From: Heptranchias perlo
Taxonomy: Eukaryota
DNA: 64,000 nucleotides
Reading direction: 5' to 3'
Assembly: GCF_035084215.1 (NCBI RefSeq)
Contig: NW_027138407.1
Location: forward strand, 1,364,001-1,428,000
Position numbers and translations under genes: made by a program. Positions 5,950 through 52,233 of the stretch are shown here, piece by piece (within the stretch, counting starts at the first letter, position 1; every line of letters begins with the position of its first letter). Under the pieces are notes generated by a model. It was given only the letters and a program-made list of their open reading frames with translations. It was not told where the DNA came from and ran no database searches.

Positions 5950-6687
5950 CTGCCGGAATATGACGAGGTCAACAGGATAGCGGACATAATGGGGAGAAAC
6001 AGGAACTGTCGGTACTTATCACAGGAGAGTGTCGTTGTAAAAACAGGAAAATCAACAAGAATTGAACTGACAATACAGAACAGGAATGTTAATGTTCATT
6101 ATTCATAACAATAATTGTGCTGTTAATTTCAGAATACGAGGTTTGATGGGACGGTGCTTCCAATCCCTGTTTATTAAATGCGCACCGTAACCTTCAACCT
6201 TAAGGAAAAAGTATTCAACCATTTCTCATTCTGTGGCCACGACCTGTTGCCTCAGTCGGCAGGAAATGAAATGAACGGCAAGAACACATTCGGTATCAGT
6301 TCGTTCTGCAGAAAGCACCCGAAATGAATGATGAGCACAGGCACAATGGGCCGATGGCTACCTTCTGTGTTGTAGCAGTCAATGAACTGCCGAGAATCAG
6401 ATCCATGTTATTCACCTACTCAGCCCATTGTTGCAACACTGGTATTTTCCAAATGTTTCCTTATAAGGAGGTTCTGACGAAAGGCCATCCACCTGAAAAG
6501 TTAACTGTTCTTCTCTCTCCACAGATGCCGCCTGACTTGTTGAGTATTTCCAGCATTTTCTGTTCTTATTTCAGATTTCCTGAATCCGCAGTATATTGCT
6601 TTTCTTTCCTTATAAGGTGTGTGTTAGGGTTCAGTTCCTGCCAATCAGATTGCATGTCAACCCGTCTGATCAGCGGGTGAAGATTTC

Positions 6688-6695
6688 TGACGTCA
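6688..6695 (+). promoter_or_regulatory. CRE (TGACGTCA) in V promoter
   Basis: Perfect palindrome ~170 bp upstream of the leader ATG at 6862; CRE-like elements are typical of TCR V promoters. Confidence 0.55.
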
Positions 6696-6861
6696 TGTGC
6701 TCTCTTGTCCACGCCTTCTCTGACCCCTGAAGATGCCGTTTCACCAGCTTTTAATTCAAGCTGCAACTTGTGTTTTGCAGTGGGAAATAGACGCACACTT
6801 TCTCTCTAATATCGAAGGACAGTTTCTCACAAGAAAGCGGCGACACAGCTCAGCTCAGGCA

Positions 6862-7320
6862 ATGGCTCTCATGTTAATGGCGATATATTTGCTGAGGACA
6901 CTTCCTTTTTTGTTCCCGGGTGAGTATTATTTTTAGTGACAAGAAAAAAAATGCATCTTAATCTTTCAATTTCCTCTGATTTCATATTTACATTTGATGT
7001 CACTATTGCAGCGGTCCTGGTTAATGGTCACAGTGTGACACAGACGGTGCCTTTATTAATGCGGAAAGAAGGAGCGACCGTGACATTAAACTGCACTTAT
7101 TCCACAAGCTACACAAGCTATTACCTGAATTGGTACCGACAACATCCACAGAAAGGACCGGAGTATCTCCTGCAGAGACATACTAATGGTAACGAATATA
7201 AAGCAGATAATCTCGGAGAACGGTTCTCTTCAGTGCTGACAAAAGCGGACGGATTCACCAGTCTGACCATCTCTGCCTTGGAGCTGACTGACAACGCCGT
7301 GTATTACTGTGCGCTGAGCT
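6862..7320 (+). CDS. TCR V-alpha/delta gene segment (family Y), apparently functional; inverted relative to and downstream of C-delta
   Basis: Leader exon 6862-6919 (MALMLMAIYLLRTLPFLFP|gt), V exon 7012-7320 (SVTQ..TLNC..WYRQ..YYCALS), consensus RSS CACAGTG 7321-7327 + 23 + ACAAAAACC 7351-7359. Confidence 0.95.
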
Positions 7321-7659
7321 CACAGTGACTCAAACTGCAGGCAGCCTCGTACAAAAACCAGCTTCCTGTTTCTACCCGAACAGGGCGATCTTGAGATTCT
7401 GCTCCAGAAATAGAACAGGTTTGCATCACCTGCTGGGATCTTAATACGGCTATTTTAGAAATACGGTGTTTACAGCAATCCGGTTTTAAATAAGCCACGT
7501 TATTGTTACTTTTTTACAAAATATATTCATAGCTTTTCGTTGAGAATTTTTTTTCCAAATTACCTGAATACGAACCTATTTTGTCCAGGTGTTTGCTCCA
7601 CAATTGATCAAAATGAAGCTAGGGAAATCAGATTGCCAGGAGCATCGCATGGTGTCTGG

Positions 7660-10744: not shown

Positions 10745-13700
10745 TGTGGAAACTGTCATTTGTCATATTTCCGTTTTTCTTAATATAATATTCTGGAATG
10801 AATTGAATTTGAAAGCAGAAAGACTGATCGTAGCATCATAGCTCACCACCCCAAAGTGATTTTGTTCCAGACAGTAACAATCTGAAAATACAACGGGTAT
10901 TAGGGTGCAATACATAATCATCATGGACACCTCTCCAACTTCCTGTCCACCCAAACTTGTAGCAACTGGCACAATGAACAACATTTATATTCGCGTTTTA
11001 AATAATAAAGTAATGATAAAAAAACATGGAATTCGGTGAAAATAGAGCAGTTAATTCAAATTGGCTTGGTGTGGAGGTGAAAAGAATATATTGTTTGTAA
11101 ATGCTTCATTGTTTCCGATTTCCCTCCCTGTTGCTCAGTGAACATCCACTCTTTCTTCTCCGGTGTTGCAACTAGTGACGAAAACTAGGGTCCATAAATA
11201 TAAGATATTCACTAATTAATCCAATAAAGAATTCAGGCGACACTCCTTTAACCAGCGAGTGGTGAGAATGTGGAACTCGCTACCACATGGAGTAGTTGAT
11301 GCGAATAGCTTGGGTGCATTTTAGGCGGAGCTAGATTAGTACTTTTGGGAGAAAAGGACAGAAGGCGATGCTGATCGGGTTGGATGAGGAGGGTCGGGAG
11401 GAGGCTGGTCTGGAGCATAAACACCGGCACGGACCATTTCGGCCGAATGGCTGTTTCTTTTCTGTTCATTCTTTGTAATTCTACAGACTCAGCATCAGAA
11501 TTTAATTTCCAAATATAGAGCGGAATCAACATAATTAATTGTCGAGACAATGGCCACCGGAGTCTGCAGATACCTGCCTCGCATTACTTACTTCCCATGT
11601 AAAATATATAATATATTATAATTTGCCTTCCAATGCAGGAACACTTTATTGTTCGTTTGAAGTAAAACGTCCATATTTCTTGTATACATTAATCATATTT
11701 TAGATTGTAACTGGAAGAAATGAATTTGAAGCAAAAAAAGGAAGGAAGAAATCGTATCTTTACAGTGATAATTTGAAACTATTCAAACTCCAACGCATTA
11801 CAGCAAAAACAGAAAAAAACAGCTTTGGTTTGTGCCATCGATTCTCACGTCTCACAAAACTCGCTCAGAGTTATTCAGGAACAATGGATTATTGCGGAGT
11901 ACGGTATCTATGGACAGAACATTGTTAGATATGTAAGAGGGTGCAGAGGAGATTTACGAGAATGGTACCAGGGTTGAGGGAATTCAATTATGTGGAGAGA
12001 CTGGAGAAACTGGGGTTATTCTCCTTAGAGCAGAGAAGGCTAAGTCGAGATTTGATCGAGGTGTTCAAAGTCATGAAGGGTTTTAATTGAGTAAGTAAGG
12101 AGAAACTTTTTCCAGTAGCAGGAGGATTGCTGAATTTAAGGTAATTGGCAAAGAAGCCAGAGGTGAGGTGAGGAGAATTTGTTTTACGCAGCGTGTTATT
12201 ATGGTCTGGAAAAGCATTGCCTGAAATGGGATGGAAACAGATTCAATTGTAAATTTTAAAAGGGAAGTGGATCAATACTGGAAGGGGAGGAAATTGGAGA
12301 CCTATGGCGAAAAGCAGGGGGAAGTGGGACTAATTGGATCGCTCTTTAAAAGAGCCGGCATATGCATGATGGGCAGAATAGCCTCCTTCTGTATCGTAAG
12401 ACTCTGTGATTCTATGATATTAGGGATGATGCATAAACGAGAATTGCATTTCTATGTTACATTTTGCTATTTAAATCTATCAAATTCACTGTCCGTAAAT
12501 TTATGTCACAGCAATGTCTTCCTACAGTAATCAAAGACATGAAGGAGTTTGCTGACGCGGATAGGCAGAAACTGTTTCCACTGGTCGGATGATCAGTAAC
12601 CAGTGGACACCGATTAAAGAGGGCCCAGCCTGTTCGGTCTTTGCTGATCGGTGTAATCTAATCGGTTCACATCGAAGCGTAGAAGTGTGAAGATTCAAGT
12701 GTGCAATTGCAGAGTGAATGAGAAAACTTAAGGAGACGTTTCCAAATCCGTTACATTTGCACGAACTTACTTTCAAAATGCTCATTAGCCATAGCAACAG
12801 ACAACAAATAGAGGGCGCCCGACATGCATCCCACAGTACACAGAGAGGAAACTTACAAGGCAAGTTGCGCCATCCAGAACTGTCATATAAAAAATAAATC
12901 TGGTGGCTCATAGTTACTGATCAGTTAGTTCCCACAAATCGGAAACAAAACCCCAACTGCGATTCACTCACTCCACGCTGCACGACCTACCCCCCACCCC
13001 GCCACATACTGGATACAGAAAGGAAACTAACAATAATAGGAATTAATTTTGCATGTTTTATTTTCATAAAGGAACTTAGTGCCAATAAAGGTAGACTGAG
13101 GGTTTCAGATTATTAATCTATCTGTTTGCTTTATATGAGGGTTGGGATTCAAATGGATTTGAGGCTGAACGGGGTAAAGCATTGTAAACGGATGCTCAAC
13201 TTTGATAAATCACTGGTTGGCCTCAGCTTTAGTATTGCGTCCAATATTGGGCACCACACTTTAGGAAGGATGTCAAGGCCTTGGAGATGGTGCAGAGAAG
13301 ATTAATAAAAATCGTTGCAGGTATGAGGGACTTAAGTTATGTGGGGACATCAGAGCAGCTGGGATTGTTCTCCTTAGAGCAGAGACGATTAAAGGGAGAT
13401 TTAATAGAGTTGTTCAAAATTATGAAGGGGTTTGATCGGGCAACAAGGAGAAACTGAATCCACTGGCAGGAGGGTCGGTAATCAGGCAATGAAGATTTAA
13501 GGTAATTTGCAAAAAAAATCCAGAAGGGAAAATTAGACATTTTTTTATGCAGCGAGTTGTTAAGATCTGGAATGCAGTGCCTGAAAGAGTGGTGGAAGCA
13601 GATTCAACAGTAGCTTGCAAAAGGGCTTTGGATATATATTTCAACAGAATAAATGTGCAGGGCTATGGGGTTAGAGCAGGTGTGTGGGAGTAATTGGAAA

Positions 13701-15050
13701 GCTGTTTCAAAAGCTGGCACAGGCATTAATTGCTGAAAGGGCTCCTCCTGTGCTACATGATTCCAACAAGTGAGGCGTCTATATTTTCTGCTTAGGCATG
13801 TCATTCTGCGCAATTGCAGCCAATCAATGATATTACAGATGGGACACTGTTGCACTAAGCTATTTGCAGCAGCTGAGCTCACTTCACTCTCTGTTTTGGA
13901 TTAAATCTCCAAGTACTGGGACAAAATATTCGCTTTCAAGCCAGATTCTCGTCTTGATAAATGCGCAAACTAGAGCATGAAATTAGATTACTTGAATTGT
14001 CCTGGCAATAGCACAATACAAAATCTTGTCTTTCTTTCTTTCATCCTTTCTTTTCTTCTTTCTATCTTTCTTTCCTTCCTGCTGTCTTATTTCTTTTAAC
14101 TGCTACGGCAGACACTTCAGGTCACTGGGAGAAAAAACTGAGACCAACTTTGGAAGTAGGCAGAAAACCGTGTCTATTGTTCGGGTGCCCACTCAGGATA
14201 TGCTTTAATCCGTCAGATGTGATAGGAGTAATCCACTGAAAAAATATGAACGTCGACATAATCTTGGAGTCGGCGCATTTCCCTTTCGCGTCCAGTCACC
14301 CACTGGTGTTCAGATTGAGGGAGAAGGTCCAAAGTGCCATTCCCCGTTTCAAAGGGAAGTGAAGAATAGACTCGCTAGGTCAACAATTGCTGATAAAGTG
14401 ATGACAATTTTGGTCCTTAAAAGCTCGTAGGCTGGCGGAAAAAGGGAAGAGTGTGGAGTGGAATTGCACATCTGAAAGCTCCGGGAAAAATTAGATAGTA
14501 TACCGTGGTCTTATGAAATGTAGACTATAGAATCATGGAATATTCCAGCAGAGGAGCTGGCCATTGTGTATTTGAACTCTGGGCTTGTGATGTTTCCACA
14601 CGAATCAGGGCCTAGCCGATACTTGAGGGCGCGGGAAACAGGTGAAAATCCACCAACCTAAATTTCTGTACCTAAGTGCTTTGCTCACTGCATTCTGGGT
14701 TAGATTTTAGACTTTACCCTTTGGGCTTTGAGGGTCACTCGGATTGAGCACAGCAAAGGAGATCTGCCGAATTGGTTGGAATGCCCAGAACAGAAGCCGA
14801 CGGATTTTGTTCCGCGAATTTCAATGGAGGGACAATGAGTTGGGTTCACTTCCTGGTATGGCAGTAAATACTGCCCATCCCTAGTTCCCCGAGGACATTC
14901 ACAGGCAACGACATACTGTGAGATTGAAATCAGGCCTGGTACCAAATTGGGTGGGGAACCCCTATCGGCCTGGGGTCCAATTGCCTTTCTTCCTCCACAA
15001 TCCAGTGCCACGGGAGCCTTCTCCTCCTGGCCAGATTTCCAAGTTTCCTT
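10745..15050 (+). repeat. Segmental duplication copy B (paralogue of ~1030-5430)
   Basis: Colinear identity with copy A, including shared LINE fragments; lacks the ~1745-1905 segment. Confidence 0.85.
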
Positions 15051-16799: not shown

Positions 16800-17115
16800 A
16801 TGTTGAACAAAAGTAAAACCTTTATTCACATTGTGGTACAAGTAGACAAAAAATTAAAACCGCGCATCATTAAAGTTACCAAAAGCATTGTTAATTAATT
16901 GCAGTACAACCAAAAAATCAAGGAGAAAACGATTGCAGCAGAGCAGAAGAGGCGCCAATTGCGAACAGAGGGTAACTTCTCTCCACGTTTAGCACGGTGC
17001 TAATGCGAGGCGACCAGAGAAAATCTCCCTCCAAAATGGTAAAGGAACAGTGACATGGCAACAGTTCAGACTCAACCCTTGAGTTGAACGGTTTGCTTCC
17101 AATGCAGACAGATGT
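16800..17115 (-). other. TRDC: Putative TCR-delta C exon 4 (3' UTR) with polyA signal
   Basis: Acceptor tttctttgacag (17116-17127, minus) and AATAAA at 16821-16826 (minus); the TM exon ends TAA G|gtaag, so a non-coding last exon is expected. Confidence 0.5.
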
Positions 17116-20100
17116 CTGTCAAAGAAATGCATCTGGCGCTCTTAGGTGATATAAAATAAAAACAAACTCAATTTAAAATAACTTTCAGAGAAAAGCAAAC
17201 ATTTGCAGGTGTTTGGGGAAAGAGCAGGGTGAGTGCGATTAATTGGATAGCTCTTTTAAACAGCCAGCGCAGGGACGATGGGCCAGATGCCCTCATTCTG
17301 TGCTGCAAGATTCCATGATTATAAGAAATGCATGTAAATTTGTGCACTAATTGCAAGCTAAAGTGATATTTTGGAAATTTCTTTTGACGAATTCAAGCAT
17401 AGAAATATAATTTTGAACTCTACCTATAAAAATCTATGATTTTATGCATGTGATCAACTTGTTTTCTTAATATATGCAATGAGCATTCGACAAAACAATG
17501 ACTATAAAATCAATATGTCACAGAAATTGGACAAACGTTTTCTAAAGGAGAAGGTTTAACAGTGGCAGGAGCAGAGAATTAGCCGATTAACACCTGCGAT
17601 ATTGAACTAAAGTAAATTGAGTCAGTTGAACTCGATGTCTCGGGCTCTGAATTCCCAGTGGGTTGTGCTCACGCTGGAATCCATTTCATCGGAGAGAATT
17701 CCTGTTTGAATAAAAGCACCAGATGTAATCAGTGGACTGCAAGAAGTGACATCGAACAGTGCACGTGAAAAGAGCGGATTTAGATGTTGAACGTATTTCA
17801 GTCTTTAACTCTCCACCTTGGAAAATTCTGCCGTGCATATGCTCAAACGCTTAACGCATGCATATAGCTTGCCTCTGTTATGCATAGAATTACATAGAAT
17901 GTACAGGATAGAAACAGGCCATTCTGCCCAACTGTTCCATGTCTGTGTTTCTGCTACACACGAGCCTTCTCCCACATGTCTTCATCTCAGCCTATCAACA
18001 CATCCTTCCATTCCTTATTCCCTCATGAACTTATCGAGCTTCCCTTTAAATGCATCTGTGCTATTTGCCTCAAATATTCCACGTGATAGCGAGTTGCAAG
18101 TTCTCGGGGTAAAGTATTTTCTACTGAATACCCTATTGGATTTGTTGGTGACTATCTTTTATTTATGGCCCCGAGATTTGGTTTCCCTCACGAGTGGAAA
18201 CATATTCTCTACGTGTAACCTATCAACCACTTTCACAGTCCTAAAGACCTATATCAGGTCACCCCTCAGCCTTCTGTTTTCCAGAGAAAAGAGGCCCAGC
18301 ATGTTCAGCCTTTCCTGATAGGTATATAATTGCCATTGTAAGTTGCTATGTCAACATTTCCTGTCCATTTTTTCTCATTCCACTGTAGCAATGCATTTTT
18401 TCTAAAAAAAAATCTCGGGATATGGGCGTCGCTGGCACGGCTGGCATTTCTTGCCTATCATTAGTAGCCCTAGAGAAGTGATGGTGGGCCTTTTGATTGA
18501 AGCGCTGCCGACCACGTGGTGAAGAGGCTCCCATAATGCTGATAGGTCGCGAGGCCCAGGATTTGACATTTGACTCAGCGACCATAAAGGTATAGCATTG
18601 CAATCTCTTTAAATTCATTGTATATTGCAACCTGTAAATATAGATGGCACCGGAATTCTGTACCAGGGCGTTGTGGGCTCGTACCGAACATAGGAACATG
18701 AGGAACAGGAGAAGGTCATTCAGCCCATCGAGCCTGCGCCGCTATTCAATGAGATCACGTCTGATCTGTGCCTCAACGATATTTTCCAACCTCCGTTGAT
18801 ATCCCTGTCTAACAAAAAGCAGTCTATCTCAGTCTTGAGAGCTCAATTGCTCCAGAGCATCCACAGCCCTTTGGGAGAGAGAATTTTAGGTTTCTACTAA
18901 CCTTTGTGTGAAAAAAATGCTTCCTGATTTCCCTCTTAAATTGCCTGGCTCTATTTGTAAGATTATTTCGCCTCGTTGTTGATTCCCCCACCAGATAAAT
19001 AGTTTATCTGCATCAACCCTATCGACTCCTTTTAACATTTTAAAGAATTCGAACAGATCAATCCTCAGTCTTCGATACTCAGTGGAATACAGGCCATGTT
19101 TACGCAATCTGTCCTCAGAAATGGCTGAAGATTAGAAATTAATAGAGTGCAGGTAGTTAATGTTTTTTCAGCTTAAGAAAATGTGGCTGGTGGGATGTGA
19201 GTACATTTGGTGCTTGTACCGCTCTTGATATTCATAGAAATACTTCATTTGGATATGGGCGTGAAGGAGATATCAAATTTGCTGACCTTATAATTTTGGG
19301 GGTGGGGACATGGAGGAAAAAAATGGGGCAGGTTGCAGGAGGACATGCGCCGTTTAGAAGAGCGGGGAGATATATGGCAAAGGGAAATCATCGTCGACAT
19401 GTGTGAGCTCGAACATGTTTGGGGGAAAATAATCGAGTATGGAAATATGAGCCGAATTGTAATCAAGTAAACAAACCGAGAGATCCAGGGGCCAGAGATA
19501 GACAGATATTTAAAAGTAGGGTCAATGACAGAAATTATGCTGTAACAACAACAGCAACAGCAACTTTCATTTATACAGCGCCTTGAACGTAGTAAAACGT
19601 CCCAAGGCGCTTCACAGCAGCGTTTCCAAACAAAATTTGAAACATAAGGAGATATAAGGTCAGTGACGATAAGTTTGGTCAAAGAGGCAGGTTTTGAGGA
19701 CTATCTTCAAGGAGTGGCGATATGGAAAGGCGGTGAACTTTATGGAGGGTCTAGGCAGCTGAAGGCACGGCCGCCAGTGGTGAGGCGAAGGAAGTGGTGA
19801 ATACACAAGAGGAGGGAATTGGAGGGATACAGAGTTCTCGGAGGCTTGTACGGGTGAAGGACGTTATGGAGATGGGGAGGTGCGAGGTCATGGAAGGATT
19901 TGAGCACAAGGTTATGCTAAACAAGGGGACTCATCATCCCAAGTAGCTGATGACGCACTTGTGCAAAGCGTTCTTTGGGTCTCAACTGGATTAATATGTG
20001 GACCTGTGGGAATCTTGTTTTCAAACTGGATATTCAAGCAATGAAGATGTGCAACAGAAAATAAATAGATTAATAACGGCATGAGCGCATTTATTGATGA

Positions 20101-20503
20101 GGAACTTGGCAAATGTAATGTGGCACAGAAATACATTAGAAAAGTTCCAAATCTGGACAAGTTTCAGAAGACATAGGGACTACAATTCAACGTCGATGGG
20201 TCGCAAAATGGGCAGTAGAGGGATCGGTTGATCATTATACTACAAGGCAACGGAAAAGCGGACAGGGTGTAGAAGCGGAGGCCAATACTCAACCCGCCAT
20301 TTTGCGCCCCCGCCGAAGTTGCATTTTACACCCAAATAGTACGAGACTATTTTCAGTGTCTGTTTTAAGAGTTTCGTTGCGGGTCGGCCGCCGGTTATCG
20401 GAATGGGAATCGAGCATTTACGTTATTGATTGCCAAGTTCATTGCTAAAATATTGTAAATAACAAATTATATTCTGCATGTGCATTGGGGTGATCAATCT
20501 TAC

Positions 20504-20614
20504 CTTAAAATAAGCACACTCTGGCCGTCAGCAGGACACTGAAAGCGACGCACTTCAAAAAGAGAACTCTCAATCCCATCACCGTCAAAGACAGAAAATT
20601 CACCCTCGGTAGAT
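20504..20614 (-). CDS. TRDC: TCR-delta C exon 3 (transmembrane/cytoplasmic)
   Basis: cttacag|(D)LPRVNFLSLTVMGLRVLFLKCVAFSVLLTARVCLF* G|gtaag; carries the Arg and Lys CD3-association residues and closely resembles the TRDC TM pattern (VN.MSLTVLGLR.LF.K). Confidence 0.93.
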
Positions 20615-20835
20615 CTGTAAGAATCATCAACTTAAAGCGTTGATTTGGTTAAACAATCCCACTGTATTTCACTAAAATACAAATATCTGCACCACAAAAT
20701 TGGAATGTATTGCTCTATCTATCCAGCTGGCTGGTTAATATACAACTATCCAAGTATCTATCTATCTGTCTAGCTCTCCTTTTTTCTGTCTGTCTTTCTG
20801 CCTTTACCGAAACATATTTAAAATAAGGTACTGAC

Positions 20836-20907
20836 CTGTTTGGGCGTCCTTCGTCCCTGCTCTGAAATTATTTGAACGTTTTCCACAATCAGGCTTTCTG
20901 CCGGGGC
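20836..20907 (-). CDS. TRDC: TCR-delta C exon 2 (connecting peptide with interchain Cys)
   Basis: ttagcag|..PGRKPDCGKRSNNFRAGTKDAQT G|gtcagt; phase 1-1 exon, in frame with the TM exon. Confidence 0.85.
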
Positions 20908-21573
20908 CTGCTAACAAACATTTAAATGATTTTTTGAGTAAGTGACTTTGTTGTTGCTATTGTTGTCATTATTATCACTGTTATTATTGTCGTTATTTGC
21001 AGCAATAATGGAGGAAGTAGTAAAAAAGCTGTAGTATTGATTCTTTGGCCTTTTTATTAATTACAGTCGGACTTCGAGAATTGTGCCAGCCCTGGTTCAG
21101 TGGTAGCAATGTGGCTTCTGAATCGGAAGATTGTGGGTTCCAAATCCCACTCCAGAGACTTGAGACCATTATTCAGACCGACACTGCCAGTGCCAGCATT
21201 GTGAGAGCGCTGCACTGTAGGAGGTGCCGTCTTTCGGGTGAGATGTTCAACCGAGGCCCCGTTTGCCCTCACCGGTGGACCTGAAAGACCCCATGGTATT
21301 TCGAAGAAGAGCAAGGGTGTTCTCCTCAGTGCCCCGGTCAATCTTGATCCCTGAATCAGCGTCACTAGAACAGATGAACTGGTCATTATCACATTGCTTT
21401 GTTTGTGGGATCTCGCTGTGCGCATAATGGCTGTTGTATTACCCTACATTAAAGCAGTGACTACACTTCAAACAGTACTTCATTGGCTGTAAAGCGCTTT
21501 GGGAATTCCCGATACCTCAAAAAGGCGCTTTATAAATTCAAGTTCTTTATTCATGAAACATTTTATTACTCAC

Positions 21574-21895
21574 CGGCTGCAGATTCCTGGCTGTCGCTTA
21601 TTTGCATAAAAAGATCGAGCCCTGTGTTTTGCCTCACACGTGACATTTACTGAATGTTTGGATGAATTGAAAGAGAGGAACCCTGAGCTCCTGTAATACC
21701 CGTTGTTTAATAAGTGACTGGATATCGTGACATCGGTCTTTGGGACAGTGGTTGTATCCATGAAGAGCCCAATCTCTTTGGGGGTGAATTCCGATACCAA
21801 ACATACCACCGCCGTGTCAGTACTCTCCCCGTCCCCTCTTTGTATCGCGGGCGGGTAAAAGACCGACACGGTTGGCTCTTTCGGAGTTTTGTCCT
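21574..21895 (-). CDS. TRDC: TCR-delta C exon 1 (C1-set Ig domain); splice-phase anomaly at its 3' end
   Basis: ttcag|(K)DKTPKEPTVSVFYP..AVVCLVSEFTPK..NGYY..VTCEAKH..|gtgagt; 322 bp, enters in phase 1 and exits in phase 2. Confidence 0.9.
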
Positions 21896-23441
21896 CTGAA
21901 AATTAAAGAATAGAACGGGGAAATTATTTTGACTTCATTAATGTTGAGCACAGACCGATACATCAATAAATGACTGATAATGAAATTCGACAATAAAACA
22001 ATAGTGCACAGAAATTTAAAGGAAAACAGCCAATCGAGCCTGTTCCACTATTCGATTTGATCATGGCTGAACTGTATCTTAACTCCATTTACCCGCCTTG
22101 GTAACGTAACCCTTAATACCCTTGCCTAACAAAATCTATCAATTTCAGTTTTGAAATTTTCAATTGACCCCAATCCTAAGCAGTTTTCCGTGGAGACAGT
22201 TCCAAATTTCCACTGCCATTTGTGTGATGAAGTGCTCCCTGACATCACCCCTGAACGGCCTGGCTCTAATTTTAAGGTTGTGCCCCCTTGTTCTGGACTC
22301 CCCCACTATAGGAATAAGTTTCTCTCTATCTACCCTTTCAAATCCTTTAATCATCTTAAACCCCTCAACCATTCTCCATTCAAAGGCATCCCATTTTCCA
22401 ATAGCTCCCTGTGTTCAGAAATTTCTCTCATCACCTTCGCTTAGTGGCTATTTCAAATTGATGACTCCTCCTCGCCTTAAATTGTTGTTAGTTGCTCAAA
22501 TCCTTATATAACGTGGCAGACGTTATTTCTTCATCCACTGACTCTAGTCCGCTGCATTAAAAATATGATTTCCCGTTATTTTCAGCAAATCAAGATTTTT
22601 GTTTTAATTCCATGGACCACCATTATTCTCGCGATCAAATAATTTGGCTTTTACGGATTAGTTGTGCTTGTGTAAGGTTGGCTTTTGCAAGAAAAATCAA
22701 CCCCATAATATCTAAACGTACATAGATCGCTAAATTTCGGCACACAATGATCTGTGAATCCAGATTATTGATTTTTTTTTTGCAATTAATGTGTATGAGA
22801 CATGGGCTATTTGAACTTACTCAAATCCACACTTCAACACAGGAACATCTGTACATCCACCGACAAACACGGTGTTAAATTTCTGTGCACAGCTGAAAGT
22901 TTCTGCATAAACTGCACCAAATGAATGGGAACACAACACAACGTCTCAAATATGATTGTTGCATGCAATGATTTAAGGTCCCCTATAACAATCCTGGAGT
23001 AATGATTCAACAAGCAATATCTGGAATGATTCCGCAGACACTGAAGCCACCGCTGGTTTCCTTTCCATCGCGGTAATGCGGATGTAGTAAAACTCTCAAT
23101 TGCATCCAATTTGTTATCGTTATGGAAAGAATGTAAACTCGCGCACAATCGCTGGAAAATTGCGTCTGATATCGAAGGGTAAACTATCAGATTATCTGGT
23201 CGTTATCACTTTGCTATTTGGAAACCTTGCTGTGCGCAAAATGCCTGCTGTGTTTCCTGCATTACAACAGTAAAGCAGCTTCAGACGTCCTGGGGTCGCG
23301 AAAGGCGCTTTCACAATTGAATGTATTATTTCTTTCTAAAAAATCATTTCCGAGCTCGTCCCCCAATATTTAGCAGATACCTTATGGCATGAATCTTTTA
23401 TTGTTACAAAAGGGCGTGTAATTTGCTTAAATGTTTCTTAC

Positions 23442-23503
23442 TTGTCTGTACAATCACTTCAGTTCCGTCTCCAAATGTTAGTTTAGCAGCATAACCTAAT
23501 CCA
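23442..23503 (-). other. TRDJ: J-delta segment, the only intact J of the cluster
   Basis: GLGYAAKLTFGDGTEVIVQT A|gtaag (FGxG intact); RSS CACAGTG 23504-23510 + 13 bp + TGTAAAACC 23524-23532; splices in frame to C exon 1. Confidence 0.92.
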
Positions 23504-23583
23504 CACAGTGATAGGTACCTAACTGTAAAACCCTCTCTGCGCCACCAGGTCTGATTCCTGCGCATTGCTCCAGAAAGAGGACA

Positions 23584-23650
23584 GGTTGTTGGAAAAGTGA
23601 ACTGGGTACCGCAGACCCCCGTTAATGGGGCAAATTATCTTAACCGCGAT
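23584..23650 (-). pseudogene. Possible highly degenerate J
   Basis: Reads PLTGVCGTQFTFPT, echoing PLxFGxGTQLTVxP; no donor or RSS recognisable. Confidence 0.35.
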
Positions 23651-23750
23651 TTAATAATAGATACCTGGTCTCTCCAACAATATTCACCAGAAGGCAACAC
23701 GTGTTCACAAGGGGGGGAAGAACGATACAATGTTCTTATATTTTGCTTAC

Positions 23751-23804
23751 CCTGTTGTAAAATAATTCTGGCCTCACTTATGAATATTAGTTTCATGGCC
23801 GTAT
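23751..23804 (-). pseudogene. Pseudo-J
   Basis: DTAMKLIFISEARIILQQ G|gtaag: KLIF and donor kept, GxG lost, RSS degenerate. Confidence 0.6.
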
Positions 23805-24123
23805 CTCAATATCCTGCCAATTAACAGCTGAACAGGCAGAAACCTGTTCCAGGAGCGCTGTAACTGTCTGGACTGTAGCGTAAAAGTAAAACCAAAAGCT
23901 TCAACTGTGGCCTCATCTTGCTGAATTGCGTACTGGACATCTTTAGAAGTGTGGCTTAATTGCCTTTCGCCATTACACACACAGTTCAGTGAAACATCTC
24001 CCTCTAGCACATACGTGTGTGTTCGTGCTAAGGACTGGATATCAGTTTAAGGAATAGACACTAACTTTGCATCATCCACTAAATCGCCCTGAATTGAGAT
24101 TAAGAAGACCCAAATCTCCACAT

Positions 24124-24186
24124 TCCGTTGCACAATCAATCTGGTCCCCGGTTCCAAATGTTAGCTTATCACCCCGCCCATACTCT
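24124..24186 (-). pseudogene. Pseudo-J
   Basis: EYGRGDKLTFGTG(+1 G)TRLIVQR; frameshift, donor GT lost, no usable heptamer. Confidence 0.75.
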
Positions 24187-24299
24187 ATTATGTAAAAATA
24201 TAACTGTGCGACTCTGCGTCTTGATTGAGTCCAATTTGAAACCGCTAAATATGAAAAACAGAAAAAGTTGAGAGACCAAATTGGGGAGTAGGTACTTAC

Positions 24300-24364
24300 T
24301 GGGTTCCGCAATCAGCCTGTCTCCATTCCAAAACGTGAGCTTTTATTTGTCTCCGTATGTCAAT
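24300..24364 (-). pseudogene. Pseudo-J
   Basis: ..GDK*KLTFWNGDRLIAEP A|gtaagt: in-frame TAA and FG->FW; RSS CACAGTT 24365-24371 with only a 10-bp spacer to ACAAGATCC. Confidence 0.75.
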
Positions 24365-24697
24365 CACAGTTGATCCCTATAACAAGATCCCTTGGAATCT
24401 CCTCCACATCTCCCAGCAACTGATCATCTTGTTCAAGAAGGATAGGGCTGGTGAGCTTAATTGCATGTCTTTATTCACCAGCCGTCTTGGAGCGTTCCCG
24501 CAATGTGATCACAGCAATAAATATCCAGGGAAAATAAAGTAACAAAATGAACAGAATGTAAAACGGTAACGCTCCGGGGGTAACCGTTGCTTGATTGCAA
24601 CTGGGCCGTCCCCGGGGCTTGTTGAGAATGTTGTTGTGCCGTTCTGTGTAGATGGGAGGTTATTGTACGAGCACTTAAGCAGACTGAAACCACTGTG

Positions 24698-25008
24698 CGC
24701 ATCGGTGCGCACACTCACAGCACAGTGATACACAGCGGAGTCACTCGATTGTAATTTGGAGATGATTAACCGGCTGATTTTCTTGACAGGATCGATAGAA
24801 GCAGAAATTCTGCCCACGGCAGCGTTTTCATTGTTCCCTGCTCCTGAAGTGTGTCTCTGTAGGAGGTATTTCGGAGCCTGCCCTGGGCACTGACTGTACC
24901 AGTGTACTGTGTACGGACAGACCCCTGACAATTTGCAGCTTAAAGTAACGGTGTCACCGGCAGCAGAGGTTTGTCGAGGCAATCTCTGGGACACAGATAA
25001 ACTGGAAT
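24698..25008 (-). CDS. Leaderless NAR-TCR supporting V-delta (STCRDV-type)
   Basis: cctgcag|(D)SSLSVSQRLPRQTSAAGDTVTLSCKLSGVCPYTVHWYSQCPGQAPKYLL..AVYHCAVSVRTDA; CDR1 Cys; no leader exon found upstream, in frame with the NAR J donor; RSS CACAGTG 24691-24697 + 24 bp + ACAATAACC 24658-24666. Confidence 0.9.
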
Positions 25009-27624
25009 CTGCAGGATGAAAATTGGGAGATTAGTATTTCTTTAGCTGCCGTTTAGACACTTGTCAATCGCATGATTAGCTCTGCCTCTTGCGGTAATGT
25101 TTTTCATCAGAAGCCGGTTCGAACTTTATTCACTTTCATTGGAAAAAGTACCAGAGGGGAGATGAGGAGAATGTTGTGTTATGCAGCGAATTGTTATGAT
25201 CTGGAACGCACTGCCCGAAAGGGTGGTGGGAGCAGATTCTATAGTAACTTTCAACACAAAATTGGATATATACTTGAAAAGGAAAAATGAGCTTGGCTGT
25301 GGGTGAAAGAGCAGGGGAGTGGGTCTAATTGGAAAGCTCTTTCAAAGAGCCGGCACAGACACGATGGGCCTCAATGTCTCCTTCTGTGCTGAATGATTCA
25401 ATGATTTCTATTAAATTTCGACTTCTATTTTTCTTGCTGAAGACGAATCCGAAGAGACATTTTGAACAATCCATTCTTCTCTTCACTGAGACAATCACCT
25501 CGCAATAATTATGGACTGAGAGTAGCCCGGGTGTGTTATGTTTTACTGCGCACAGCAAGATCCAATTGAAAGTAGTGAGATCCTTTATCAATGGTCTTTG
25601 TTGTGAGCCGGAGCATGTCCGTCGCAACCTTTTAACTTGGACAGAACATCAGCAACGATTGACCCAAACTGACACTGAATATCTGTGGGTCAAAGGTCAG
25701 ACTTTAATTGCACGTCACGGGAGCTCCAGTCCGCCGCTCGCTCTATTTTTCTATTTTCTTGCCTCATTGGGTTCACTTTTGTCCAATTCACTTTAATCTG
25801 AGTTATTTTCAGTTACTTTCATTTCTACATCTGGGTCGCTCCCTTTCTCCCGTTTTTGGTTTCCCGCCATCCTGAGAACTTATCCCAAAGTCTCTCATTT
25901 ATTGGTGGGATCAGTCTGTGCAGTTTTGCAGTGGTTTTACTGTTACTCACTGGGAACTGTCTCTTCCTAGGGTCTAATAATGTCAATTACTTCATACTAT
26001 TGTTGATCCTCTCCCGTGTTCTCCGGGCAGAGTTTTCTCTGAGTTTTACACCATACAGAATCTGTACAACAGAAAAAGGCCATTCGGCCCAACTGGTCTA
26101 TTCTGGTGTTTATGTTACAAAACAACCTCCGCCCGCTCCAATTGTCTCTTCCCACCCTGACCACCACGGATCCACCCCACCCCACCGCGCTATCTCTCTA
26201 TTCCTTTCTCTCTCAAGTATACGTCATGCCTCACCTTAAATGTGTCAATCTTATCTGCTTCAACTATTCCACTTGGCAGCACGTTCCACATTCTCACCAC
26301 TCTCTGAGTAAATAAATTCCTCCTACCTTCTTTATTTTTTCTGTTAACGACTATTTAATATTTATGGCCCCTTGTTATGGACTCACCCACAAGTGGAAAC
26401 GGTTTCTCCACATCCACCCTATCGAACACTTTCATAATTTTAAAGACCGCTTATCAGGTCTCCTCGTGCTCTTCTCTTTTCCAGAGAAACGAGCCCCGGC
26501 CTGTTCAATCTTTCCTGCTGCTGGTATCTTTTCTCAGGCGTTTTAGAAATGCAAAGCTGCGAAAAGGCCCTGATCCCAATCGAAGCCCATCTCTCGGGTA
26601 AATCTAACTCCATCGGTGCCGGATTGTACTTTCAACGGCCCAGGGGTCGGTGTCTCCACACTTGCCCGGCAATGGGCGATATTTCACTCCCTTTTAGTGA
26701 ATTAATTCTTGCTGGTTCTAAATGGACTTTTCTCCAGCCTGTACTTGTTCCCTCGGGTGCTCCTGTTTTCCTTTATAAGAACATTTGCGCCTCGCACTCA
26801 CTCTCTCACTGCCCAATGTTGTTTCAATTAACATTAACGAAGACGCCAGATAAATTAATGCAAACCGATCTCACAAACATTGACAGTAAATATAGAAAAA
26901 TGTCTGTCGTTGGATGCTTTCAAATTTAGACTTAAACGCGGAGCATCGAGAAAAAAATGATTGTTTATTTGAAGGGAATTGAAATAAATATTAGATAAAA
27001 TGCAATTAATTTCAGTCACTGGGTGTCCAATCATGAAATGCCATCTAGACCTACAGCTGATCTCTTGTATCTGAAGCCCCGCCGTGTTATGCTCCAGTGT
27101 TTCTGCCGCTGCAGTAATCGGATGGGCCACTGTAGTGTTGGGTTTACTCGTCCGGTACCTCATTCACACTGCCCAGCTTGGACTGTAATCTCCTGCCCAG
27201 GAGAGAGATCTGTAGCCTCCCTTGTGCTCACAGGGACAGGCAGGTCTCCCTCAGTCACAAGTTAACACTGAGAGCGGATGCCGGAGTGCGGACAATCTGC
27301 GCTCATTTACATCAAATTGGGATCAGAGTAAGAAAGAGTCCGCGATGTTCATGGGATCCCCGAGGTCCCCGTTAAACCAGTGATGGTCCAGATGGGGTCA
27401 AACCCCAGTCTGCCTGTTCGTGGGGGGTCTCACAGCTCCTCCCTCCGAACTCACACCCGGTTCATATTCTGGTGCGGAATCTATAACTGCAATGGAAATG
27501 TCCCCTTAGAAAACCGCTATATTTTACTTTGAAGGGGAATGAGGTGATACCAATCACAATAAAAAAACTGCCGGTGAATATTAACCGGAACCTCTGTAAC
27601 ACGGCGGGGTTTGGAGTCACTTAC

Positions 27625-27701
27625 CGGCTGTGACGGTTACCACCGTCCCGGATCCATCCAAATAACAATATCGCCCCTCGTAATATCCAGCACCACAGTA
27701 A
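27625..27701 (-). other. NAR-TCR J segment (IgNAR/IgH-type, 23-RSS), 77 nt
   Basis: YCGAGYYEGRYCYLDGSGTVVTVTA G|gtaagt; RSS CACCGTG 27702-27708 + 23 + ACAAGAACC 27732-27740. Confidence 0.9.
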
Positions 27702-28091
27702 CACCGTGACACCGCTCTCAGTCACCCCGGTACAAGAACCACAGACACCTCAATCTGCTGGTCACACATCACCATAGAGTCCACGCTGCTCAATTATTCC
27801 AGGGATTTTAGATCAATAAACAATATTCCATGTTTCACAGTCCCAGTCGGTTCAAACTCTTCTTTCTGAGACTCTCGGCTCTTTGTAAAATGGCCCCGGT
27901 ACACGGGCAGGAGATGGGCGTTTAATATAAACGGAGAAAATGTCAAAGAAAGATCACTGAAAGCAGGAACTTGCAATAAAATTAATCCAGATTACAGCGA
28001 TAATAACATCAAACCTACAATTCAGGATCCGGACCAGGAGAAGTGATATTTTAATTGTACAGAGGTATTTGCTGAGGTCTCTTCCACTGTG

Positions 28092-28104
28092 ATTTTCCCA
28101 TAAA
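28092..28104 (-). other. NAR-TCR D segment (12/12 RSS)
   Basis: TTTATGGGAAAAT, open in all three frames (FMGK/LWEN/YGK); 3' RSS CACAGTG 28085-28091 + 12 + GCAAATACC; 5' RSS CACAGTA 28105-28111 + 12 + ATAAAATCC. Confidence 0.9.
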
Positions 28105-28492
28105 CACAGTACTTCAAGTCAGCATAAAATCCCCCAGTCTTTAGTGATACGTTGGGACATTAGTTAAACGGCGGGGATTGCGGATCTCGGTTCCAGCTGT
28201 TAGAACAGGATCCCATCTGGTGTTAAGGACTTGTAAATGGGATCAGTCATTCCCAATCGCCATTCATTGACACCAATCCCAGGAAAGACATCATCCGCAC
28301 AGAGTCCGCAATTATAAAACACAAGATGTGAACTGTAATAATCCAAACTCATTATTAACTAGAGTGTGGGGCAGAAGGTCCGAGGCGGACCTGTTGGGTT
28401 TAATCGTAAATAATCTCTGTTTTTCCATTTGTTTCCGTGACAATCTGCAGTGAGAGTTTTTGTATCACGGGAAGCCGAGACCTATCACTGTG

Positions 28493-28967
28493 GTCTTCAT
28501 ACTTTGCTTTACAATAATAGGTGGCGCTATCTTCAACTCTCGTATCCCTAATTTCCAGCGAAAATATATTTTTTGCATAATTCGTTGAAGCAGCAAATCG
28601 TCCTCCGCCGTAGATCCGCTTCCGCTTTGTCCCGCTCTGAGTTTGTTTGAAGAAATCCCCACTCTGGAAATAATAATACGAAGCATCTGCTTTGAAAACG
28701 CAGGTGATGGTGAGAGACTGACACTCCTCCCTGGTCTTCGCTGCCGGGGTCTGTTTCACTGACTGACCGAAAGAGCCTGGAAATTAAACAGAGAGAGAGT
28801 TTAATGAGACATCAGAGCCGAACCACACAACGGGGATAAAAGGGTGACCGTGTCTGCAATTTGAATGGTCAGGGCAGCGTTGTTTTAAATTCACACATTG
28901 TACGTTTGGTTGAACGGTACTCACGGGGTAAACAGACACACAGGATGAAAACAAGGAGGATTCCCAT
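28493..28967 (-). CDS. NAR-TCR V (IgNAR-like V domain) with leader
   Basis: Leader 28967-28925 MGILLVFILCVCLP|gt; V exon 28776-28493 QSVKQTPAAKTREECQSLTITC..GGGRF..FSLEIRDTRVEDSATYYCKA; only 62 aa between canonical Cys (VNAR-like CDR2 loss); a-b loop Cys; RSS CACAGTG 28486-28492 + 22 + ACAAAAACT. Confidence 0.92.
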
Positions 28968-28991
28968 CGTTCTGCTGCCCGGAGCTGATGG

Positions 28992-29092
28992 TTTATATGA
29001 CGGGGAGCTGGAGACTGCAGCCCGGGACTGCCCTGGGAGACTGTACCTCAGAGCTGTACTTAAATACTTTAGGGGATCGAGTTCATTTGCAC
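28992..29092 (-). promoter_or_regulatory. Putative NAR-TCR V promoter: TATAAA and octamer-like GTGCAAAT
   Basis: TATAAA at 28992-28997 (about 25 bp upstream of the ATG); GTGCAAAT at 29085-29092, one mismatch to the Ig octamer. Confidence 0.45.
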
Positions 29093-30693
29093 AGGGCAGT
29101 GTCCCGGAGATCATTAATGGTCCGCACGGTTCCCGGAGCTCTGGCTGTGCGTTGTGTGAATAAGCGACAGGTTTAAAGACGGACCTGCAGTTTTATGGCT
29201 TTCCTTTCGGTCTCTGGGCCCTATCTGAAAGCCCCTCCCACATTAGTCTGATGTACAGGAGGGGTTGACTTGTTCTGTCAGCAGAGGCTGCCGCCTCCTT
29301 TGCCCCACAGTGTTGAACTGGGCGGTCGATTCATGTGTTTTTATTGGGTGATGTTTGTTGAGGGTGAAATGTTGGCCCAGGACACCGGGAGAATCCCCCC
29401 GCTCTTATTCCAATAGTGCCGGGGGATTCTTTAACATCTCCCTGAACCGGCTGACGGGACCTCGGTTAAACCTCTCATCCGTAGGACCATGCAGAGCTCC
29501 CTCAGTCCAGCAACTGAGAGTCAGGTTACAATATCAGACAGTCCAGTGCCATTTTCAATATACAGGCAGATATACACAATATATAGAGAGAATAAACTGT
29601 CACTGTAATTTAAACAAACGCTTCGTGCACCGTCCCCTTCTGTAGTTTGCATTAAAAAAATCTGTTTACGTTATTTCTGATGAATTCTGACCTTGATTGT
29701 GTCTGTACGATTTATTTCAAGATCCCCAATCTTCAGATTTTCCTATTGCAATTTAAATTGCATTAATAATTCGTAATAAAATTAAAACATAACTCAACTT
29801 CCATTTTGAATTAATGCCTTTATTTCCAAATCTGCTTCTTTAATCGATTTTCTTAAGTAAAGAACTGAAAATTGTTTACAGGCTGCAACTCGGCCCCACA
29901 CTGAAACCAACACAGTGAACACATCCTCCCACTGACTATATATAAGTACAAGTTTAACCAGAGTTGGAATCTGCCCCGGAGCTGCTCTACTGGGAAAACC
30001 AGCAATAAAGTTAGCCGTGTGCCGTACATGCACAGGAGCTGATACTGAGTCACAATAACAGACGGGAGTGAATCGTTCCCTTTTACCCTCTGTCTGCTGT
30101 GCATGTACAGGAGCTGACACACGGTCATTGTTTCTCTCTCTCCATCTCTGTCCCTCTCTCACCTCCCTCCCTTTCTCTCAATCTCTCGCCACTACCTCGT
30201 TCTTCCTGTGTCTTTCCTGCTCAACCATTGCTGCTTCTGTATTTCTCTTCCTCCCTGTCCCTATCTCTGTCCCCGCTCTCTTTCTCTCTCTCTCCCGCCT
30301 CCTCTGCTCCTATCCCCCCTTTCTTTCCCCATATCTCTCCTCCTCGCTTTCTCTCTCTGCTCTTAACTCTCATCCTCTGCCCCATCTTTCTCTCTTTCTT
30401 TCATTCTCTCTCTCACTCCTCCTATCTCTCACCCGATCACTGCCTCACTCGATCTCTCCTTCTATCTCCCACTCTGCTCCTATGTCTTCACCGGTCTCTT
30501 CCCTCTCTCTCTGACGTGTCTCTGAATTTTACTTGATTGAAACACATCCTGTATAAAGCAAGTACAAATCTCATTTCTGTAGCATTTTATATATATGAAA
30601 GTTTCAATTAGTGGATGGAAATCTGTCGGGTAGATCTCATCTTGAAAGATGTCAGTGTTCAAAATTTTGTTGAGACGTGATTCTCCGATGATG

Positions 30694-35228: not shown

Positions 35229-35749
35229 ATGTTGAGTGTTACTTTTTATTTATTCGTCACAGCTGCAGCTCGACTCACTGGTAAAGTTTACAATCTTCCT
35301 CTTGCGCGTGCCATTGAGATAGAGAATGTTTCTTTTACTGCTGTTTCCTCTCTATTTTCAATGCATGCTGTCACCTTTATGGCATTAGTTATAATAAGAT
35401 GAATATAAAAGCTCAAAGTTCTGCATTTTTAAATTTCTACAGGTGTTAATTGTGTAGACTCGGTCTCACAGTGGCCGGTTGCAGTGATGCACTCTGAAGG
35501 GGACACGGTGACCATTAATTACAGCTATTCTACGACTGGTGATTCTTATTCCTTACAACTGTACCGTCAGGACGGGGCCAACGGCCCCACATTCCTGATC
35601 TACAGCCCTTCCTACGGGGATGTTTTCAGAGCAGATGGAGTGGGTGCTCGATTTTCCGCAGCTCTCGACACTTCGAAAACCGAGGGGAATTTCACCATCA
35701 GCGGCCTGCGACTGAGTGACAGCGCTGTGTATTACTGCGGGCTGAGAGC
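35229..35749 (+). CDS. TCR V-alpha/delta segment (family X); open frame but Cys23->Tyr and Trp41->Leu
   Basis: Leader 35229-35280, V exon 35443-35749 (DSVSQ..TINYSYS..LQLYRQ..DSAVYYCGLR); RSS CACAGTG 35750-35756 + 23 + ACAAAAACA. Confidence 0.88.
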
Positions 35750-36567
35750 CACAGTGACAGGAACTGGAGGGGGCCTCGTACAAAAACACTGCCGGAATGT
35801 GACAACGTGAATGGGATAGCGGGCAGTATGGGGAGAGAGAGAGGAACTGTCCGTACTTTTCACAGGAGAGTGTCGGTTTAACAACAGGCAAGTCAACAAT
35901 AATCCGGCTAACAATACAGCATTTGAATAATCATGTTCATTGTTATTAATAATAACCGTGCTGTTAATTTCATAGTAAGAGATTTGATGGGACTGTGCTT
36001 CCAATTCCTGTTTATTTAACGGGCAACTTAACTTTCAACCTTAGGGAAACTAATATAATACCGGTTCTCATTCTCTGTCTCAGACCTTTTGTTCCAGGCG
36101 GCAGGAAATGAGCTGAACGGAGGGAATACATTCGGTTTTGGTTTGGTCTGCAGCAAGGCCCCTAAATGATTGACAAGAACGGCCGAGAATCAGATCCCCG
36201 TTACTCCGCTCCTCTGCACATTGTGGGGAACACTGATGTTTTTCCAGCTATTTCCCTATAAGGTGCGTTTAGGGTTTAGTTGCTCCCATTTGGATAAATG
36301 TCAAATCTCTCTGATCAGTGGGCGGAGCTTTCTTCTGCCACGTGATCTCTGCCTTCCGTTGTCCCTGATGAGGACGTTTGTCAAAAAGATCGGTGGGAGG
36401 AGCTTTCTTCTCTCAGGCAGCCTCTTGTCCACGCGTTCTCTTGACGTTTCACCAGCTTTTAATTCCAGCTGCACCAGGTGCTTTGCCCTGGGTTGGACCG
36501 ACACTTTCCATCCAATACCCAAGGGCAGCTTTTCGCAAGAAAGAGTCGATACAGTTCAGCCCAGGCA

Positions 36568-41760: not shown

Positions 41761-42388
41761 CCAGAGACTTGAGCCCCATAAATCAGGCTGACACGCCAGT
41801 GCAGTTCTGAGGGAGTGCTGAACTGTCGGAGATACCGTTTTTCGGATAAAGCTTAAAATCGAGGCACCGACTGCCCTCTCATTCGGACGATAAGGAAATA
41901 GCCCATGGCCACTATTTTGAAGAAGAGCAGGGGAGTTATCCCCGGTGTCTTGGCCGACATTTATCGCTCAAATAGATTATCTAGTCATTATCACCTTGCT
42001 GTTTGTGAGACCCTGCGTTTGCTAAATTACAACAGCGAGTACAATTCAAAAGTACTTAATTGCCTTTCAAGAGCTTTAGGACGTCCTGGGGGTCATGAAA
42101 GGCGCTATATAAATGCAAGTTCTTTCTTTCTTTCTCTTTTTCTTTCATTCTTTCTCTCTTTTCTTTCTTAGTTCTCTCTTTCGTTCTTGTATCTGAATTT
42201 ATATATATATATATATATATTATGAGTAAAGGTAAATATGTACTAGAAATAACAGCACAATGTACATCCACAAACGCAAGAATCAGCTCAGACTCGCCGC
42301 TCATCACAATGATCCCCTAAAGCGCCGATATGTTGAGCGACGCTCTGACAGTTTTTGTACAGGTTCAGCCCAGCTCCGTGTCTCTGTG

Positions 42389-43863: not shown

Positions 43864-43877
43864 CTGCCCTCTGCTGG
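43864..43877 (-). promoter_or_regulatory. CTCF-like motif
   Basis: CCAGCAGAGGGCAG on the minus strand, upstream of V 43040. Confidence 0.6.
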
Positions 43878-52219: not shown

Positions 52220-52233
52220 CTGCCCTCTGGTGG
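52220..52233 (-). promoter_or_regulatory. CTCF-like motif
   Basis: CCACCAGAGGGCAG on the minus strand, upstream of V 51370. Confidence 0.6.

Follow-up and report, generated by a model that had tools for sequence, protein, structure and literature searches.

Organization of the locus

The subject of this analysis is a cluster of T-cell receptor (TCR) delta-type gene segments in a 64-kb stretch of the genome of the hexanchiform shark Heptranchias perlo (contig NW_027138407.1, positions 1,364,001 to 1,428,000; hereafter the window), which contains a single run of N at 47936-48415. The system in question is the new antigen receptor TCR (NAR-TCR), the doubly rearranging TCR-delta of cartilaginous fish, reportedly described by Criscitiello et al. 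in 2006. On the minus strand, from 28967 to 20505, lie in this order a leader exon, a NAR-type variable (V) exon, a diversity (D) segment, a NAR joining (J) segment, a supporting V-delta exon, three J-delta segments and the three exons of a constant (C) gene, namely exon 1, a hinge exon and a transmembrane (TM) exon. Searches and alignments were run exon by exon on window coordinates, the spliced model never being joined. The features, with their recombination signal sequences (RSSs), are as follows; RefSeq protein models are denoted by P numbers, P0001 being XP_067833084.1.

28925-28967, minus strand: leader exon of the NAR-type V, with ATG at 28967, 43 nt, and a phase-1 GT donor at 28924.
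28493-28776, minus strand: NAR-type V exon, an open reading frame with a Pfam V-set match (E = 5.8e-09).
28455-28492, minus strand: 23-type RSS of the NAR-type V, with heptamer 7/7 at 28492, a 22-nt spacer and nonamer 8/9.
28064-28132, minus strand: D segment with two 12-spacer RSSs; coding part 28104-28092, 13 nt.
27625-27740, minus strand: NAR J, with a 23-spacer RSS at 27740-27702 (heptamer 6/7, nonamer 8/9), coding part 27701-27625 and a phase-1 donor.
24698-25008, minus strand: leaderless supporting V-delta exon, beginning at the phase-1 acceptor 25008; Pfam V-set, E = 2.8e-13.
24658-24697, minus strand: 23-type RSS of the supporting V, with heptamer 7/7 at 24697, a 23/24-nt spacer and nonamer 8/9.
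24300-24371, minus strand: J1, a pseudo-J (coding part 24364-24300) in which FWNG replaces FGNG, with a stop in frame and a weak RSS.
About 24122-24185 (5' limit approximate), minus strand: J2, with FGTG and a GT donor and no recognisable heptamer.
23442-23532, minus strand: J3, the only intact J-delta, with coding part 23503-23442, heptamer 7/7, a 12/13-nt spacer, nonamer 6/9 and a phase-1 donor.
21574-21895, minus strand: C-delta exon 1, 322 nt, Pfam C1-set, ending in phase 2.
20836-20910 (acceptor 20910 or 20907), minus strand: hinge (connecting-peptide) exon with the interchain Cys, 84% to residues 200-224 of P0001 by tblastn.
20505-20614, minus strand: TM exon with its stop codon at 20507-20505, located by sequence and tblastn.

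An initial annotation of this DNA had described a leader-V-D-J-V-J-C unit on one strand, and every element that it listed was recovered on the minus strand where it had been placed or close by: the D with two 12-spacer RSSs, the J with a 23-spacer RSS, the leaderless supporting V, a single intact J (J3) and a C of the TRDC type. Its further statements about the surroundings were borne out as well. Conventional V segments lie on both sides of the NAR-TCR unit and on both strands, and no J-alpha array follows the C gene, in that no J with FGXG plus donor was found within the window on the minus strand below 21.5 kb. A tblastn search of the whole window gave a C-delta count of one.

The NAR-type V, D and J segments

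The 5' end of the unit is anchored by the M. asterias (Mustelus asterias) NAR-TCR model P0022, whose residues 1-17 match 28967-28917 by tblastn and whose NAR V shares 60% identity with that of the window. The translated V exon carries an extra Cys ahead of the first canonical Cys (EECQSLTITC), ends in YYC and reads FFKQ at the WYRQ position, the Trp being absent. According to an excerpt of PMC1845163, the marks of a NAR-TCR V are a leader, an a-b loop Cys and absence of the Trp from the WYRK motif, and the V of the window has all three. A sequence search of the PDB points the same way: the best 20 chains are all shark VNAR or new-antigen-receptor V domains (one filed as 'Nanobody' and one as 'nanobody protein'), with a best E of 7.9e-17.

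The D segment is flanked by a 5' RSS with heptamer 6/7 and nonamer 7/9, and by a 3' RSS with heptamer 7/7 and nonamer 7/9. The coding part of the NAR J is long, includes two Cys residues and ends in GSGTVVTVTA. Its junction into the supporting V, GSGTVVTVTAD, is common to models P0022, P0026, P0027 and P0003; the equivalent junction is GPGTVVTVTAD in P0021 and GSGTVVTVTAG in P0028.

The supporting V-delta and its J segments

The second V exon has a Cys in complementarity-determining region 1 (CDR1; SGVCPY) and a long germline 3' end, and shows 91% identity to its counterpart in P0021, an H. perlo model. Lack of a leader and a conserved CDR1 Cys define the NAR-TCR supporting V-delta in the available part of PMC1845163, and the exon shows both. 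In the PDB search it gave generic antibody V matches only.

Two of the three J-delta segments that follow appear to be dead. J1 was missed by both the RSS scan and the FGXG scan, and J2 probably cannot rearrange. J3 is 73% identical to the J of P0001 and of P0021. It ends in IVQT as opposed to the usual J-delta end IVEP, which is present in both H. perlo models; the altered end may be a further drift of this copy.

Recombination signals and joining logic

Within 20000-30000, five strong RSSs were observed against a mean of 0.225 expected, and none of 200 first-order Markov resamples, which served as the chance control, reached five. The signals form two rearranging sets with compatible spacers, V(22/23)-(12)D(12)-(23)J and V(23/24)-(12/13)J3. 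Given the 12/23 rule, these RSS types force the first domain to be assembled by V-D-J joining and allow the second only V-J joining; the same rule likewise permits direct joining of the NAR V to J3. The RSS scan found no pair able to flank a D between the supporting V and J3, in agreement with the segment order of the initial annotation, which has no D there. Its claim of compatible splice phases also stands as far as it went: the phases fit from the leader through C exon 1, where that reading stopped, and fail beyond it, at the hinge and TM exons.

Related gene models and the constant-region tree

C exon 1 carries CLVSEFTP, which fits the trdc signature CLXXXFXP as given in an excerpt of PMC10322711, and the TM exon retains the conserved R and K. 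Together with the nearest proteins, which are shark TCR-delta-like models, these features identify the constant region as being of the TCR-delta type. An HMMER protein search with exon 1 returned 20 proteins at E <= 0.001. The best match, P0001, is an H. perlo J-plus-C model on a 1.7-Mb contig, with 88.7% identity over 97 aa. P0021, on the same contig, is 84.5% identical over 97 aa in C exon 1, and is laid out as NAR J, supporting V, J, J, C exon 1 and then TM directly, the hinge being absent. Mustelus asterias has eight C-delta-bearing RefSeq models (P0003, P0022-P0028) on eight contigs, with two C subtypes, and five of the eight (P0003, P0022, P0026, P0027 and P0028) comprise leader, NAR V, J, supporting V and, further on, C. 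These models are automatic and built on germline DNA, and thus show the proximity of the parts rather than the existence of such mRNAs. They indicate that the cluster arrangement is not confined to a hexanchiform genome. Many of the M. asterias models lie on small unplaced contigs.

In the C exon-1 tree, the C of the window falls together with the two H. perlo models (support 99/98), and the copies of M. asterias form a group among themselves, a pattern that fits lineage-specific duplication or homogenisation; the tree, made from shark and ray models, has 17 rows, 16 of them different, leaves 7 of its 13 inner branches unresolved, and was built without C-mu and without a canonical C-delta of the same species. 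The initial annotation had offered two origins for the cluster, a precursor of TCR-mu or a convergent analogue of it. Grouping of the C with C-delta of its own lineage favours the convergent half of that proposal and disfavours the precursor half.

No H. perlo protein resembling P0002, a conventional-V Pristiophorus model used as a guide to the canonical C-delta of the lineage, was found in the protein search. A PDB search with C exon 1 gave Ig (immunoglobulin) light- and heavy-chain constant domains as best matches, with no TCR-delta or TCR-mu chain among the 60 matches listed, so that the C cannot be placed by this route.

Read contigs and transcripts

Reads were examined as Logan contigs from one sample, comprising four DNA runs that contain 72-76% of the sampled words and three probable RNA runs, and the contigs were placed on 20500-26499 only. 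One RNA contig (run X5) joins 23442 to 21895, that is, J3 to C exon 1, and RNA contigs of runs X5 and X6 join 20836 to 20614, hinge to TM, in each case exactly at the predicted borders. Two more RNA contigs track exon 1 as far as 21601 and then carry 25 differing letters. When read by hand, the first of these enters the hinge at 20908, in frame and lacking the T discussed below, and the second enters the TM exon at 20615, reading K-R-D-S-L-Y-C-A-A and then D-L-P-R-V-N, the junction found in P0021. The animal therefore transcribes at least two further C-delta genes, and the sample is linked to H. perlo or a very near relative. With one to five mismatches, the RNA contigs that lie on the exons stem from paralogues. 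At 95% likeness no RNA was seen on the supporting-V bins, nor was any RNA contig specific to this copy seen in 20500-26499.

These data bear on the integrity of the assembled cluster. It could be an artefact, for example a haplotig duplicate or a collapsed or chimeric join between a J-C unit and a NAR cassette, given that repeats and local duplications abound in the region and that many of the M. asterias models come from small unplaced contigs. Against this, the short-read DNA contigs of run X1 cover 30 of 30 bins, several pieces being free of mismatches (for example 23205-23466, across J3); the same segment order is seen independently in gene models from two other assemblies; and an RNA contig links J3 with C exon 1 precisely at their borders. 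An artefact is therefore considered very improbable.

A different possibility is that the local J and C segments are relics, and that the NAR V-D-J and supporting V form a translocon cassette using a distant D/J-delta and the canonical C-delta, as in the classical nurse-shark model. The 23-type RSS of the supporting V would suit any downstream 12-RSS of a D or a J, the C of this copy looks broken, and TCR alpha/delta of sharks is described as translocon in the parts of PMC12227049 and PMC6795676 that were available. On the other side, gene models and RNA contigs show C of the cluster type being spliced, with NAR and supporting V upstream, and the relic reading is rated as quite improbable.

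The apparent frame break in the constant gene

Compared with P0001, exon 1 follows frame 0 as far as SFYA, and the remainder of the exon matches in frame +1 (SDSQESAA versus SDSQDYAA), which places the shift at an extra T, 21600, inside a run of A. With one base contributed by the J, the 322 nt of exon 1 end in phase 2, and the hinge and TM exons require phase 1. The hinge acceptor at 20907 is suggested by the RNA contig of a paralogue, and the frame problem is the same with 20907 or 20910. Followed by hand, the out-of-frame reading into the hinge exon meets a stop after about six codons, ahead of the hinge Cys and the TM region. The extra T would thus cause the hinge to be read to a stop, and no membrane anchor would be made. 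Alternative exon-1 donors and direct splicing of exon 1 to the TM exon, as in P0021, were considered by hand as means of rescue, and none restores the frame. The TM exon has in addition an S where 15 of 15 other C-delta models have N, and a C where 14 of 15 have W.

The C gene of this copy is, on these sequence grounds, probably a recent pseudogene. The initial annotation had seen in this copy a working, dedicated mini-locus; that view is not supported, given the 1-nt insertion relative to the closest relative, which puts the hinge and TM exons out of frame. If the damage is real, the intact columns of the Ig domain indicate that it is young.

Several observations weigh against a broken gene. 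The Ig part of exon 1 is undamaged and keeps 19 of the 19 conserved columns of an Ig domain. The extra T is putative: no indel near 21600 is listed in the DNA contigs, though no contig, whether of DNA or of RNA, is seen to cover 21574-21600 of this copy. At 21724 the only DNA contig there differs from the assembly, as do RNA contigs, changing I to R, the residue of both H. perlo models; this mismatch is an allele or an assembly error in the same exon. The RNA mismatches described above and the probability that the DNA run containing the window comes from the assembled animal itself belong with these cautions.

On such grounds the cluster might be fully functional, the T at 21600 being an assembly error or confined to one haplotype, and the C, together with the local J3, yielding an ordinary NAR-TCR delta chain at the membrane. 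The conserved Ig columns speak for this, as do the intact leader, both V exons, D, NAR J, J3 and all splice sites, and the mismatch at 21724, which implies that the assembly is imperfect here or the animal heterozygous. However, the extra letter is a T within a run of A and not a simple error in homopolymer length, the TM changes fall at positions conserved in 15/15 and 14/15 models, two of the three J segments are already dead, and no RefSeq protein identical to this copy turned up, whereas two paralogues did. A fully functional copy is accordingly judged unlikely.

The shifted frame ends exon 1 in QPGICS, with a stop next if the intron is retained, and in an HMMER alignment this end is paired with SPSEC, the C-terminus of a lambda light chain. 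The likeness to SPSEC is probably a coincidence of the shifted frame. There is only a very slight chance that the end GICS gives a secreted chain with a light-chain-like C-terminal Cys.

Setting of the cluster

Direct duplications of 80-91% identity, spaced 8-10.6 kb apart, surround the cluster (2620-5020 and 12232-14655; 35421-36136 and 46058-46770; 42262-43939 and 50333-52295), indicating local tandem duplication as the way in which the V array expanded. The cluster is bracketed by an inverted repeat whose arms, 83-89% complementary and about 50 kb apart, are an inverted V at 6924-7325 with its 5' flank (6668-7316, plus strand) and 57695-58335 (minus strand). Very deep contig cover in both DNA and RNA runs at 21100-21560, 21900-22500, 25100-25500 and 25900-26500 marks interspersed repeats. 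They occupy the J-C intron, the intron between C exon 1 and the hinge, and the region upstream of the supporting V, and one looks tRNA-derived and like a short interspersed element (SINE).

The surroundings also bear on whether the window simply holds the 3' end of an ordinary translocon TRD locus, in which the last NAR-TCR cassette stands beside the sole D-J-C-delta and J-alpha segments begin just outside the window. The inverted V at 6924-7325, downstream of C, resembles in position the inverted V-delta behind mammalian TRDC, and the window extends only 21 kb downstream of C. This interpretation is contradicted by the lack of a D-like RSS pair between the supporting V and J3, by at least three other C exon-1 ends in RefSeq models and same-animal RNA, and by the further V segments, rather than J segments, that come downstream. 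It is largely refuted and, in our estimate, hardly credible. The alternative raised by the initial annotation itself, that this might be the only C-delta of the genome, is likewise answered by the two H. perlo and eight M. asterias RefSeq models and by the animal's RNA, in which two additional C exon-1 ends occur.

Proposed mechanism and interpretation

The likely explanation is that NAR-TCR clusters exist in multiple copies, one of which, with its own C probably broken, occupies the window and lies within the TRA/TRD V array of a hexanchiform shark. Going by the observed segments and RSSs, RAG would fuse the NAR V (23-type RSS) with the D (12/12), then add the NAR J (23), and would in a separate event join the leaderless supporting V-delta (23) directly to J3 (12), with no D; both rearrangements are deduced from these signals. 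Transcription would start from the NAR leader, and phase-1 splices would connect leader, NAR VDJ, supporting VJ and C exon 1, with the hinge and TM exons coming last. Of these splices, the phases are observed up to C exon 1, and J-to-C and C-to-hinge-to-TM splicing is seen in RNA for relatives of this C. A delta chain of three domains would result.

The copy in the window has probably lost its self-sufficiency, judging from the predicted effects of the extra T, the loss of two of three J segments and the change of two near-invariant TM residues. Its intact V-D-J-V part could still pair with a J-C unit further downstream.

For the wider group, the balance tips slightly toward a more general proposition: that the NAR-TCR of at least hexanchiform and triakid sharks forms a family of clusters of the TCR-mu kind rather than a set of cassettes feeding one shared D-J-C-delta. 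Every cluster would possess a J-delta and a C-delta of its own plus a supporting V that lacks a D, and the clusters would be transcribed and lie scattered, in either orientation, along the V array of TRA/TRD. Such a family would be a cluster-type TCR locus in the oldest jawed vertebrates and an independent second invention of the TCR-mu architecture, with copies being born and decaying, this one caught just after its C broke. If so, the supporting domain would be nearly fixed in the germline here (one J and no D), as in TCR-mu; the paralogue-specific C-delta ends would offer a handle on dedicated constant genes, or on a T-cell lineage, for double-V chains; and the present copy would serve as a dated example of cluster decay.

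Comparison with known systems

The cluster resembles NAR-TCR in its leader-bearing NAR-type V with its own D and J, in the leaderless supporting V-delta with a CDR1 Cys behind it, in its C-delta-type constant region and in the three extracellular domains predicted for the chain. It differs from NAR-TCR as described in having its own J-delta set and its own C-delta within 3 kb of the cassette, in lacking a D for the supporting V and in being repeated in the genome. In the excerpts of PMC12227049 and PMC6795676, NAR-TCR is presented as an extra V on an ordinary delta V-C; the former (2025) gives the TCR alpha/delta of sharks a translocon organisation, and the latter (2019) likewise treats cartilaginous-fish TCR genes as translocon. 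A full-text literature search turned up no account in which NAR-TCR clusters possess a J-delta and a C-delta of their own, although a published map with several C-delta may exist. What is new here is that the C of this copy, from its sequence, looks broken.

Shark Ig miniclusters (V-D-D-J-C), as outlined in portions of PMC1845163 and PMC12227049, are comparable as self-contained V(D)J-C units that occur in many repeats, some of them pseudogenes. Those miniclusters, however, are Ig loci, whereas the shark TCR genes are described, in PMC12227049 and PMC6795676, as being of the translocon type. The cluster further differs from the second TCR-delta loci of galliform birds and Xenopus, in which each chain has a single V domain and there are no repeated clusters with two V per unit. 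Xenopus C-delta2 is a further case of an extra C-delta for Ig-like V domains. The likeness lies in that extra C-delta, which serves Ig-like V domains in the galliform loci as well (chicken and turkey, in the excerpt of PMC3457774).

Marsupial TCR-mu, given as [Vmu-Dmu-Jmu-Vmuj-C] in the accessible part of PMC7615758, likewise forms tandem clusters, some partial or decayed, with a supporting domain of little diversity. Its V2 is joined in the germline, unlike the shark V2, which still needs V-J rearrangement. The platypus TCR-mu cluster, [V1-Dn-J1-V2-J2-C] according to the same part of that source, comes closer still in the features that it shares with the shark cluster: the segment order, assembly of V1 by V-D-J joining and of a D-less V2 by V-J joining, a C of its own in each cluster, and several clusters per genome. 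The differences from platypus concern the parts and their location. In the shark, V1 is NAR-type and not VH-related, V2 is a NAR-supporting V-delta, the C is a C-delta that belongs to the lineage of the shark itself, and the cluster is embedded in the TRA/TRD V array and does not occupy a separate locus. The NAR-type V1, the own-lineage C-delta and the TRA/TRD location argue that the likeness to TCR-mu is convergent. For the protein, such convergence is already accepted in the excerpts of PMC3457774 and PMC7615758; if NAR-TCR does consist of repeated self-contained V-D-J-V-J-C clusters, it would have converged with the TCR-mu of monotremes and marsupials in the architecture of its genes as well as in the shape of the protein.

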